DNA from: Macrostomum lignano
Lineage: Eukaryota
Reading direction: 5' to 3'
Length of the DNA stretch: 64,000 nucleotides
NCBI GenBank assembly: GCA_002269645.1
Contig: NIVC01000810.1
Location: 62,001-126,000 of the forward strand
The notes under the pieces were generated by a model. It was not told the origin of the DNA. It searched no databases and saw only the letters and a list, made by a program, of their open reading frames with translations. Shown here one piece after another: positions 11,306-61,329 of this stretch. Both the position numbers and the translations under genes were made by a program. Position 1 is the stretch's first letter, and each line of letters begins with the position of its first letter.

Positions 11306-14300
11306 TTACCCTCAACCAATTCTTTCAGCCAAGGGTGCTCAATTCTGCAGGCTCACTCCTTCCAACCCCTGTTCGGAGGCCGCTTTGTCGCGCTTGAACC
11401 AGAACGATGACATCATTATTCTAGCTGATCAGCCGTGCAGAGTTACTGCAGTGAAATGCGAAATCAGAATGCTAAATAATTACACTTTAAAATTGGGCTC
11501 GGTATGACCTGCTTTGCTTTCATTGCAAATAATTATTGCTTAACTGAAAGCACTCTAGAATTTTCCTTCTTTACAGACTCGTCATTCGAACGAATCTCGA
11601 AGACTCTCGAAGTTCAAAGTCAGTCCGGAAATGGATGGGGCCACCTTATGGTGCAGATGGGGCTGCAGCAACGGACAGAACAAAGCAACCAGAGAGGTTC
11701 TGCGATTGACACAGGAGAAATCAATTCGTAAGCTGAAAGACCGAATTTTGATTGTTACAGATGAATGCGTATGAATGGGTTGTAGTCCAGCGGTTAGAGC
11801 GTTGGATTACGACTTAAAGGTCGTGGGTTCGATTCCCGATAAATTTGTGTCCATGAGCAAGACACTTAACTCTGCATTGATTCTGAATCTCACCTTTTGA
11901 GTTCCAAATCTCACCTTCTGGATTCCTAATCTTAGTCCCTTTAAGGGGTCTCAACCCCGTGTTAAGGGGTTGTAGTCCAGTGGTTAGAGCGTTGGACTCA
12001 CGGCTGTAAGGTCGGGAGATCGATCCTCGATCTACTCGGAACAATTTTTGTCTTTGAGCAAGACACTTAACTCTGCAATGCTTCAGTTCACCCAGCTGTA
12101 AAATGGGTGCCAGCATTAGCTGGGTAACTGAGGGTGTGTGTGGCGACCCCCCAGTCCTTGGACTGAACAGCCGTACGCAACCTTCAGATGCGCCGCGCAA
12201 TAGCTGCGGCTGAGCTGTCGGTTGCACATCTGGTACATTGCGGCAGGTGTAATCATTAATATTATTATGAATGCCCTTAGCAAAACTACAAATGACAACC
12301 AAAACTTTCCCAGGTGGTCCTAATTTGCAAATTATCAACGTGAACATCACCGAGCACTGGGTGATTGGTAGACTAGCAACTTTCGAATTCCGCACCGAGG
12401 GTTCAAGACCACTGCCTGTGCACAAATGCTGGTTAGACAGACCTGACAGGGGAAAAGACACGTTCCGGCCAATTTCCGTGAGCTTCTGGCTTTATTATTT
12501 ATTTATTTAGTAACCTATGGACAGATAGGCAAAATCTGAAATCATTCAATTGCAAATAAATTTTAGAATGAGTCCAGTTCTGATCGTTCATACTTTGATC
12601 TCAGTACTCGATTCGCTGTTAATGTGACAAAAGATTACAAAGGCGGCAAAATCAGTTGTCAGGCTGAGCTGGATGGTAATTCGATCTACTCTGAAGTAGC
12701 AAGGGAGCCTGTTCCTCGTCTTCTGGGTGAGTTGCCTAAACACCTTCTAATCTGTTTTTGAGGTTTTTGAGAGGCTCTAGCCTCTGGCACCAAGGGGCTT
12801 TAGCACCAAGGGGCTTTAGCACCAAGGGGCTTTAGCACCAAGGGGCTTTAGCACCAAGGGGCTTTAGCACCAAGGGGCTTTAGCACCAAGGGGCTTTAGC
12901 ACCAAGGGGCTTTAGCATCAAGGGGCGCCAGCATCAAGGGGCGCCAGCATCAAGGGGCGCCAGCACCAAGGGGCGCCAGCACCAAGGGGCGCCAGCACCA
13001 AGGGGCGCCAGCACCAAGGGGCGCCAGCACCAAGGGGCTTAAGCCATGCCCCCGATGAAACTCACCATATACAATACTTACTGCCTCGCCATAGGTATGA
13101 TGCGCTATTGCAATATATGAATTTTAAATATCTTCAGGGCCGTGCCAGACCCGGCTTAACCTGTCGATCTTCAGCTGGATTGATGGCGAGGCAGTAACGC
13201 TGACGGTTGACTCATCAGAGGCCAACTGGGTGACCACCAGACACCTTTGCTGGCTGGAGATCCAGCAGGAAGGAAACACGTCCATCCAAGTGTCCCCAGT
13301 GAGTTCTGGACTCCAAGTTATGGTCAGATTTCTGTCAGAATTATCCGACCGTCTTGTCCGATTCGGTTTCAGGTCTCCAGCATGACCAGCACGATCTCGG
13401 TGATCCCGATGCGAGGCTGGGGCAACAAAGCCGCCATTGTGTGCCAAGCGAATCAGTCGGGAATTTTCGAGACCTGGTCTCGACTGTCACTGGAGCCTGC
13501 TCTATGCAAGTGGCAGCGCTCTTTAGTTAAAATTGTATTATTAGCACTAGAAATATCAAGCCGATTTTTACAGACTCTAAGTTCAGGATTCGACTACATG
13601 AACGCCTGAATTTTATCACAATGAGCGCCCCGAAAGCTTAAATGTGATCAATTTTTTAAATTTTAGACAAGGCCAGCTCTCCGTCCATCACCGGTTTAAC
13701 CTACAACCACATCTACGAAGGGGTTAACGTGACCTTCTCTGTCAGTTCAGTCGATGGCAACCCCAGAGTGAATCACTACTGCTCAGCTGAGCATGGATCG
13801 ATTGTGAGTCAGTGGTCTCATTATTGAAGCAGTTTGTAACGTGTTCTCAATTTTCGATGATGAAAACTTTCAGGCCAGTGTATCCAGAAAGCCAGAGGCT
13901 CACGGTTTCATCACAACTGAGTTCAGCTTCACGCCACACAGGCTTGATAGCGCTATCCAGTGCTGGGCTGTTCAGGTTCTCGAATCGCGCACCGTCTTTT
14001 GCAGCAATTTCAGCGAGAGCATCAGCGTCAAGTGTGAGAGCTGCTGCTCAGCTTTTCAACAGTCTATTTTTGAGTACTTTTAGCGGAGGGACTTAAATAA
14101 AAGTACATGTCTTTCATTCGTCACAGATTTAGCCAACAATGCGGTTCTCATCAGTCCCAGCGGCTGGATAGCCGAGGGCAGCGTTGTCAACGTCACTCTG
14201 GTATCAGATGGAGGCAGGCCAGCCGTCAGAGATCTCAGCTGCTGGGTTGGAGTCACCCGCATTGATGTAGTAGGTATTTGAAGTACAAATACTGCAGTGC

Positions 14301-60552: not shown

Positions 60553-61329
60553 ATGCCCAGGCTGCTGATCCTGGTGGCTTTCGTCTGCAGTCTGTGCTGC
60601 TTCAGATGCTGTGAGTTTCGGAAGGACTTTTGAAAAGGACACACATTTAAGGGAATACTGCAAAGGCACCGACGGATTCAGAAATTCTCCCAGATTAAAA
60701 CAGATCAAAGTAATTCGAAGGATATACTACTCATTTCTATTGAAGCCTTTAGCACAAACCATATACGAGTATAGTTATGTAAAAAAATACAACTCATAAA
60801 GCTAGCAAAAAACGTAACGAATCGTTTGAATAGGCCGTGGCATCAAGGTCTCCAGAGCTGAGATGGCCAATGCCTGGCAATCGTCTGTCTACAATCACCC
60901 AGAATGCGATTGCTTCATCAGATCAATGGACAAGCCGGGGCAGTGGCCCTATTTTCATACCAGCGACACTCCGGACCCCTCCGGCTACCAGTGGCTGCTG
61001 CTGAAGCTGACCCGAAGTGTCCCAGTGCGCTCCATCACTGTCTATGGGAGACAAAACTGTAAGCCATTGGCGTTCCATTACTGAGCTACAGTAATAATGT
61101 ACCCAGAAGTAATTGCCCTCGTTGCACATCAGTCAGCCACAGAGCACTGGGCATCGAAGTGCTGCTCAGTGAGAAGAAGCCAGCCGGTCTGGATGAGGAT
61201 GCACCCAACTGCACTGCAGCCGCTTTCAGTCACAGTCTGTCCGGATTCCAACACTGCGGCTTCACCAGAAATGACAGCAGCAAGTCAAACAGGACGCAAG
61301 TGACCTGTTCAGCTGAGGGCGATGTTAAG
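60553..61329 (+). CDS. G5: 5' three exons of a G4 paralog (signal, lectin-like); remainder absent from the window, interrupted by gypsy sequence (pseudogene or long intron)
   Basis: Exons 60553-60610 (MPRLLILVAFVCSLCCFRC, phase 1), 60834-61058 and 61133-61329. The third exon is nearly identical to G4 53564-53772. Confidence 0.8.

Follow-up and report, generated by a model that had tools for sequence, protein, structure and literature searches.

Lectin-like heads on immunoglobulin stalks: a cluster of five putative membrane receptor genes in the flatworm Macrostomum lignano

Introduction

What kind of proteins are encoded by the array of paralogous exons lying between 11.3 and 61.3 kb of a 64,000-nucleotide stretch of the Macrostomum lignano genome (NCBI GenBank assembly GCA_002269645.1, contig NIVC01000810.1, positions 62,001 to 126,000 of the forward strand; hereafter the window, whose own numbering is used throughout), and do they belong to any previously described class of receptors? 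To our knowledge, almost no surface recognition receptors have been characterized in free-living flatworms. The array emerged from an all-versus-all comparison of open frames, and five paralogous genes (G1-G5) were spliced by hand within it through three-frame reading and script assembly. An initial annotation, made from the letters alone, had placed a cluster of receptor genes at 11306-61329; the end of that interval is the exact end of G5 exon 3 and its start lies 23 nucleotides before the first modeled exon of G1.

The architecture of the family comprises a signal segment, a jelly-roll head, a cysteine-rich beta-sandwich, a stalk of two to nine immunoglobulin (Ig)-like domains, a single span across the membrane and a tail that is short and basic. 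We favor the reading, at a probability of roughly one half, that these are type I membrane glycoproteins acting as cell-surface recognition or adhesion receptors. Below we present the evidence for the individual modules, weigh the alternatives that each of them brings up, and consider how the cluster might have grown.

Gene structure of the cluster

Three of the genes, namely G2 (34881-23153, minus strand; 23 exons, 1326 amino acids), G3 (40093-48567, plus strand; 22 exons, 1343 amino acids) and G4 (52622-56473, plus strand; 10 exons, 592 amino acids), are flanked by G1 (11329-17568, plus strand; 17 modeled exons, 874 amino acids, with an uncertain 5' start) and G5 (60553-61329, plus strand; 3 exons, 160 amino acids). 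All reading frames are open, with no in-frame stop in any model. As many as 68 of the 70 introns are of the GT-AG type and two are GC-AG, the latter occupying a homologous position in G1 and G4 (in G4, the intron after 55525). Many introns span a mere 66-90 nucleotides. Intron phase is also conserved: exons encoding half of an Ig domain run from phase 1 to 0 or from 0 to 1, and those encoding an entire domain from 1 to 1. Together, the conserved phase, the open models and the consensus introns indicate that this gene structure did not arise by chance. Pairwise exon-by-exon tblastn comparisons among the copies give E-values of 1e-17 to 1e-46. Chance open reading frames were also considered and ruled out, given the 70 consensus introns and the frames of 592-1343 codons in G2-G4.

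The initial annotation had proposed that G2-G5 share an N-terminal exon. Consistent with this, the exon motif AWQS...YFH[ST]..T.DPSGYQWLLLKL...YGR was found exactly four times in a six-frame scan of the window, with copies near 34370 (minus strand) and 40981, 53258 and 60834 (plus strand). In our model G1, the fifth gene, opens partway through the cysteine-rich exon, in its second half; exon-by-exon tblastn detected no lectin-like head exons for it in the window. A candidate signal exon lies at 10305-10371 (plus strand; MAYSFKQKWYIVCTLLMYNFDI, then one base, then GTGAGT; phase 1), the phase of which fits the acceptor at 11328 and the frame of which closes with the G1 model. It is a candidate drawn from phase and frame rather than from homology, and its compatibility suggests that G1 may be a head-less paralog and not a fragment.

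The N-terminal head

In G2-G4 the head of about 165 residues is encoded by exons 2 and 3 together with the first ~30 codons of exon 4: 34369-34151, 33183-32984 and the start of 32908-32585 in G2 (minus strand); 40981-41199, 41589-41788 and the start of 41864-42187 in G3 (plus strand); and 53258-53482, 53564-53772 and the start of 53840-54139 in G4 (plus strand). The corresponding lectin-like exons of G5 are 60834-61058 and 61133-61329 (plus strand). The acceptor of exon 3 is ambiguous by 9 nucleotides in G2 and G3, and is in frame either way (in G3 the alternative is 41580).

The skeleton of F-type lectin/discoidin domains had previously been read in this region, and three lines of evidence bear this out. 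First, a family profile, searched exhaustively with HMMER against 1.84 billion representative proteins, recovered only 23 of them at E ≤ 1e-3. The close relatives among them come from M. lignano in every case where the source was looked up, and the outside matches are a Tigriopus protein (E=2.3e-13), named 'fucolectin tachylectin-4 pentraxin-1 domain-containing' and with an F5_F8_type_C score of its own of 180 bits, one from Rana in which four canonical F-lectin repeats occur (E=2.9e-4) and an unnamed protein with two F-lectin-type domains (E=5e-4). Second, an hhalign comparison of the family with the repeats of these outsiders gives a probability of 94% (E=1.5e-7; 131 columns), the alignment covering the whole domain from AWQSS to LLQIEE. 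Third, the head was modeled with AlphaFold on the database homolog P0001, which is 57% identical to G3, with peptides of the window exons among the alignment rows (predicted local distance difference test, pLDDT, 64.7; predicted template modeling score, pTM, 0.53). Foldseek matched this model to jelly-roll structures at probabilities of 0.99-1.0, with the eel fucolectin 1k12 and the structures 4oyu, 3nng and 2v72 reaching 1.0. Besides the fucolectin, these jelly-rolls comprise the discoidin domains of muskelin and DDR1, CBM32 modules, an F5/8C domain and SUN domains. When taken as a two-domain unit, the model matches beta-glucuronidases, neuropilin b1b2 and CD22.

Of the approaches named in the initial annotation, structure prediction followed by Foldseek on P0001 yielded a jelly-roll, and Pfam yielded nothing above threshold: there is no match for the head alone, G3 scores 12.1 bits on F5_F8_type_C, and its relatives score 12-17 bits on F5_F8_type_C or F5_F8_type_C_2 as against gathering thresholds of 27.8-28.2. 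Among solved structures the only relevant sequence match is a weak one, to the bass F-lectin FBP32 (E=0.81, HMMER). At the level of profiles and a predicted fold, the head can be placed in the F-type lectin/discoidin jelly-roll group, as a divergent member.

Compared with the F-type lectins (AAA 1k12, FBP32 3cqo, oyster bindin and Drosophila furrowed), the head has a like jelly-roll with homology at the profile level and carries the same skeleton, QSS ... H[ST] ... W.l.L ... V.V.i.(N/G)R ... R..G.EV ... yVll...ln..E.E; some of those lectins, too, occur in mosaic membrane proteins. Unlike them, it has neither the vicinal Cys-Cys nor the fucose and calcium motifs, which are HX24RXDX4(R/K) and h2DGx, respectively (PMC5712786), and matches no Pfam model at threshold. 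What is kept in G2-G5 and most relatives is a family variant, H-X30-R-X5/7-R; the Asp of the fucose motif is present only in G2 and G3. The HMMER alignment to FBP32, weak as noted above, puts the His/Arg/Arg of this variant on the lectin triad. Sugar binding by the head is no more than a possibility.

The cysteine-rich module and the Ig stalk

The remainder of exon 4 together with exon 5 encodes a cysteine-rich module (the rest of 32908-32585 plus 32507-32357 on the minus strand in G2; up to 42414 in G3 and up to 54362 in G4, both on the plus strand), which in the P0001 model is predicted to form a further beta-sandwich (pLDDT 74-82). It is followed by Ig-like domains, each derived from one or two exons, which number seven in G1, nine in G2, nine in G3 (42687-47976, plus strand) and two in G4 (55137-56156, plus strand), just as had been counted originally. 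Stalk length varies through exon and domain duplication: the G3 stalk contains a repeated two-domain unit, in which exons 10-12 resemble exons 13-15, and the first four Ig-like domains are common to G2 and G3, with the remaining five of G2 differing.

For structure prediction we used a single-exon domain, that of G3 exon 15 (45901-46218, plus strand), with the paralogous domains as alignment, and obtained a confident Ig sandwich (pLDDT 81.2, pTM 0.71). Its best Foldseek match is SYG-1 D1-D2 (TM-score 0.73), with further matches to Roughest, VEGFR2, VCAM-1, CD22 and SYG-2, and MAG is also among the matches. On the Pfam model C2-set_2, G3 scores 19.6 bits versus a threshold of 21, the relative P0010 attains 21.0 and others 15-17. 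In this exon and in every paralogous Ig exon, the first of the conserved cysteines follows GNPxP, beside a tryptophan where one is present (…GGNPEPSHRCW…), rather than being placed in the preceding strand, and the second lies in the …VACSV… strand. This unusual position of the first cysteine suggests a non-canonical disulfide in these domains. Among the 8000 candidates scored, a search with four Ig domains retrieved only M. lignano proteins and one ostracod protein (E=1e-6, 25% identity).

These Ig domains bring up the alternative that the family serves in cell-cell adhesion in the manner of the nephrin/Kirre proteins (SYG-2/SYG-1, Hibris/Roughest). The head would then be a protein-binding module, as in the discoidin domains of DDR, neuropilin and Caspr, and would have lost its lectin activity. 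The Ig domain indeed finds its closest structural counterparts in SYG-1, Roughest and SYG-2 (TM-scores of 0.64-0.73 across the nephrin/Kirre proteins), C2-set_2 is the sole near-threshold Pfam match, the head lacks the canonical motifs for sugar and calcium, and, as noted above, Foldseek extends the matches of the head to the discoidin domains of DDR1, neuropilin b1b2 and muskelin. Both groups also have a type I membrane topology and numerous Ig domains. However, the sequence link of the head is specifically to FTP-type lectin proteins and the nephrin/Kirre proteins have no lectin-like head; conversely, the flatworm family is restricted to Macrostomum and has no FN3 domain (no Pfam match), its tails are short, and a lineage-specific tandem expansion would be unusual for core adhesion molecules. 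Nor did the family-profile search, or the Ig-region search among its 8000 scored candidates, reveal orthology to nephrin/Kirre, which we reject; a 1:1 relationship of this kind was what the initial annotation had named as telling against a lineage-specific family. On balance, we regard the adhesion alternative as possible but rather unlikely.

Signal segments, membrane spans and tails

At their N-termini, G2-G5 open with a short exon encoding a signal peptide that looks cleavable (34881-34821 on the minus strand in G2; 40093-40147, 52622-52670 and 60553-60610 on the plus strand in G3, G4 and G5). All four are of phase 1, as had been proposed; the supposed C/Y-C-F ending is displaced, with the motif lying two residues before the end of the exon (...CCFYV, ...YCFRN, ...CCFWT and ...CCFRC). 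In each of G1-G4 there is, as anticipated, a single span of strong hydrophobicity with basic residues after it, and the hydrophobicity of the signal and transmembrane segments fits a type I membrane protein. The ectodomains carry 14-47 N-glycosylation sequons (N-x-S/T) per protein. The transmembrane exons lie at 17306-17445 (plus strand) in G1 and 23458-23271 (minus strand) in G2, and a single exon encodes both the span and the tail in G3 (48278-48567) and G4 (56244-56473), both on the plus strand.

The tails of G1-G4 are 24-61 residues long and yield no Pfam domains, kinases included. They had been taken to be unrelated to one another, which does not hold for all of them: G2 and G4 share a juxtamembrane segment, LKR...VEL.AA...DP[SN], and G1 and G2 end in a homologous tyrosine-rich mini-exon (17545-17568 on the plus strand in G1, encoding KYKYEDA and the stop codon; 23179-23153 on the minus strand in G2, encoding TVYYEADN and the stop codon). 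A search downstream of G3 and G4 found no such mini-exon. The tail of G3 is unlike the others and is found nearly identical in the genomic copy P0034. Among the relatives, tyrosine motifs occur in P0014 (TVYYYEENP), P0011 (VVYAQV and TEYTEI) and P0021 (TVYLEI).

Relatives and comparable receptor families

All close protein relatives of G1-G5 are M. lignano proteins without a described function, which argues that the genes are not orthologs of nephrin. The family accordingly appears, on the databases searched, to be restricted to this species, in line with the lineage-specific origin originally suggested. A homology search with full-length G2 gave no match at E ≤ 0.001 among 8000 candidates sharing words with the query. 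Two proteins encoded elsewhere in the genome, P0034 and P0036, match exons of G3 and G2, respectively, at 90-98% identity and have the same junctions. Such near-identical copies fit the duplicated genome reported for M. lignano (PMC10733133). At the locus of the distant relative P0011 there is no neighboring family member.

The initial annotation did not recognize the architecture as a named family, and our searches agree: we found no literature on the family or on the gene identifiers of its relatives (Mlig012130, Mlig034318, Mlig021334 and Mlig026357), the supplements of expression papers make no mention of these four identifiers, and the literature on Macrostomum lectins and immunoglobulins and on platyhelminth F-type lectins did not yield the family. 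The domain partners listed in a review of F-type lectins do not include an Ig-like stalk (PMC5712786). Hence, the domain types are known and the combination of an F-type-lectin-like head with an Ig stalk is new with respect to the literature searched.

Several receptor families offer partial parallels. Discoidin-domain receptors, neuropilins and Caspr likewise place an F5/8C-type jelly-roll in the ectodomain of a single-pass receptor, but they possess kinase, CUB, MAM or laminin-G domains, none of which occurs in the flatworm family. The mollusc FREPs, CREPs and GREPs and the Hydractinia Alr proteins are also lineage-specific, clustered invertebrate families; the FREPs and their relatives similarly combine Ig-like domains with a lectin-type domain, and the Alr proteins are clustered Ig-like membrane proteins. 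However, FREPs are secreted and have the Ig domains at the N-terminus and the fibrinogen domain at the C-terminus, Alr proteins have no lectin domain, and neither has a sequence relationship to the flatworm proteins. A FREP-like fibrinogen domain was considered for the window genes and rejected, there being no Pfam match.

Growth of the cluster

G2 and G3 stand head to head, as the arms of an inverted duplication that extends over 26825-34497 (G2 arm, minus strand) and 40853-44395 (G3 arm, plus strand). The nucleotide identity of 94-97% between the arms suggests a recent event. A 3.6 kb insertion at ~28653-32274, in intron 5 of G2, is absent from G3; its open frames (29029-29391 and 31080-31520) have no Pfam match. 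Between the arms lies a DDE_3 transposase remnant (36384-36881, minus strand; Pfam E=4.9e-13). Across exons 2-10, 12 synonymous and 20 non-synonymous changes separate G2 from G3; the ratio of non-synonymous to synonymous rates (dN/dS) is 0.51 for the whole and 0.33 for the head exons. The pair G4 and G5 arose by an older duplication, with dN/dS values of 0.92 in exon 2 and 0.56 in exon 3; the differences in exon 2 are concentrated between QSS and FH[ST], and its second half is invariant. Taken together, these ratios (0.33-0.92) reveal a degree of constraint, and they fall short of demonstrating diversifying selection.

The similarity of G5 to G4 ends about 10 nucleotides into intron 3, with unrelated sequence beyond, and no additional G5 exons were found from intron 3 to the window end at 64000. 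The UniProt protein P0006 is identical to G5 across the coding parts in the window and continues with exon-4-like sequence missing from it, indicating that an allele or copy of G5 in another assembly continues normally. The segment after G5 exon 3 (61340-64000) is unrelated to G4 and contains two open frames that resemble each other (61508-62191 and 63195-63998; 34% over 92 amino acids). The interval 61658-62194 had no match when tested against Pfam. The segment probably represents a mobile element that has entered intron 3 of G5.

These features could be taken to mean that the cluster consists largely of recent duplicates that are weakly expressed or decaying, some of them (G1, G5) pseudogenes, given that G1 has neither head exons nor a proven start, G5 is cut by inserted sequence, G2 intron 5 and the region between G2 and G3 harbor an insertion and a transposase remnant, dN/dS reaches 0.92 in exon 2 of G4/G5, and no NCBI Mlig_3_7 entries (BOX15/PAA accessions) for the G1-G5 subfamily are among the matches listed; but we hold this to be improbable, as G2-G4 maintain 592-1343 stop-free codons across 10-23 exons with every splice site intact, the insertions are intronic, dN/dS between G2 and G3 is 0.33-0.5, and copies with 90-98% identity and the same junctions exist elsewhere in the genome.

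Micro- and minisatellites are numerous in the window, several of them in the introns of these genes. A 17-bp minisatellite, TGCACAAACACACGGTG, is present in intron 2 of both G2 (33245-34086, 49.5 copies) and G3 (41265-41527, 15.5 copies), the differing copy numbers indicating change after the inverted duplication. Intron 5 of G4 contains 9.6 copies of a 34-bp unit at 99% identity (54829-55154), each of which copies the acceptor and the first ~25 bases of exon 6, such that the array as a whole supplies about nine extra potential acceptors; with a unit length that is not divisible by 3, the majority of these would shift the frame. A (TAC)162 microsatellite (15721-16207) fills most of intron 13 of G1 and reaches the acceptor of the next exon. 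A dispersed repeat family with 60-80% translated identity has members in introns of G1 (11814-12491) and of G2 (24318-24670 and 25746-26013) as well as upstream of G4 (52067-52373). Another repeat is shared by 10710-11230, just upstream of the first modeled exon of G1, and 48568-48983, just downstream of the last exon of G3. ARAGORN and Rfam searches detected no RNA genes in the window, the dispersed repeats included. Upstream of the cluster lies a RhoGEF (DH domain) gene (1874-9173, plus strand; Pfam RhoGEF E=2e-20 at 3098-4135), in the region of which there are tandem arrays with units of 12-82 bp (2394-3069, 3577-4114, 4691-5744, 6236-7223 and 8060-8644).

Discussion

In the reading that we favor, namely that of type I membrane glycoproteins in cell-surface recognition or adhesion, the head would bind an extracellular ligand, most likely a glycan, at a site formed by the conserved His...Arg...Arg (H58, R89 and R97 in G3; H58, R89 and R95 in G4), and the stalk would determine how far the head extends. 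A coupling to intracellular signaling might be provided by the tyrosine-rich mini-exon at the C-termini of G1 and G2. In its logic (lectin head, Ig stalk, membrane span, tyrosine motif) this design would be similar to that of the Siglecs, with another lectin fold in place of theirs. The cluster itself would have expanded by local duplication, including the recent inverted duplication with the DDE transposase remnant between its arms.

Several observations weigh against this reading. At the level of the head, the predicted model is of moderate confidence (pLDDT 64.7) and comes from the 57%-identical homolog rather than from a window protein; a regular-expression search for the fucose motif HX24RXDX4(R/K) found no match in the family, and the calcium motif, sought as [VAI][VAI]DG[NDS], is in no family member, such that glycan binding is not assured. 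Moreover, hhalign does not pair the His of the family with that of the lectins. At the level of the genes, the head is missing in G1 and G5 is interrupted, no transcript evidence was obtained for G1-G5, and the close relatives occur only in the computational ML2 annotation, with the NCBI Mlig_3_7 entries returned being distant members only. Finally, the tyrosine motifs of the window genes miss the strict consensus of the immunoreceptor tyrosine-based inhibitory and switch motifs (ITIM and ITSM).

A more specific version of the recognition reading posits a flatworm-specific analog of the Siglecs, in which the head would recognize glycans carried by partners, sperm or microbes and tyrosine motifs would relay the signal, with the paralogs diversifying in the loops around the edge of the binding site. 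The diversification component is drawn from the stretch between QSS and FH[ST] in G4 and G5, where dN/dS is near 1 and the rest of the exon is invariant. Like the Siglecs, including CD22 and MAG, the flatworm proteins display a distal glycan-binding head (here predicted), a stalk with a variable number of C2-type Ig domains, one membrane span and a tail with tyrosine motifs. However, the Siglecs bind sialic acid through an N-terminal V-set Ig domain, in which an arginine is essential, whereas the head of the flatworm proteins is a jelly-roll, the two have no sequence relationship, and the tails in the window lack a strict ITIM or ITSM; it is the distant relative P0011 whose tail, with VVYAQV and TEYTEI, invites the comparison with those motifs. 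We put forward this version only tentatively, and consider it doubtful in its full form.

More generally, a combination of an F-type-lectin-like head with an Ig stalk and a membrane anchor would represent a new build of lectin receptor, parallel to the Siglecs and the mollusc FREPs. The cluster also illustrates how such a family can grow, with inverted and tandem duplication, duplication of stalk domains and transposon-rich introns. A role in immune, self/non-self or gamete recognition, as first suggested in the initial annotation, is plausible. Macrostomum lignano is used for the study of regeneration, sexual conflict and sperm competition, and both RNA interference and transgenesis are established in it. 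Given this tractability, the family may provide concrete candidates for receptors in immune, partner or gamete recognition.

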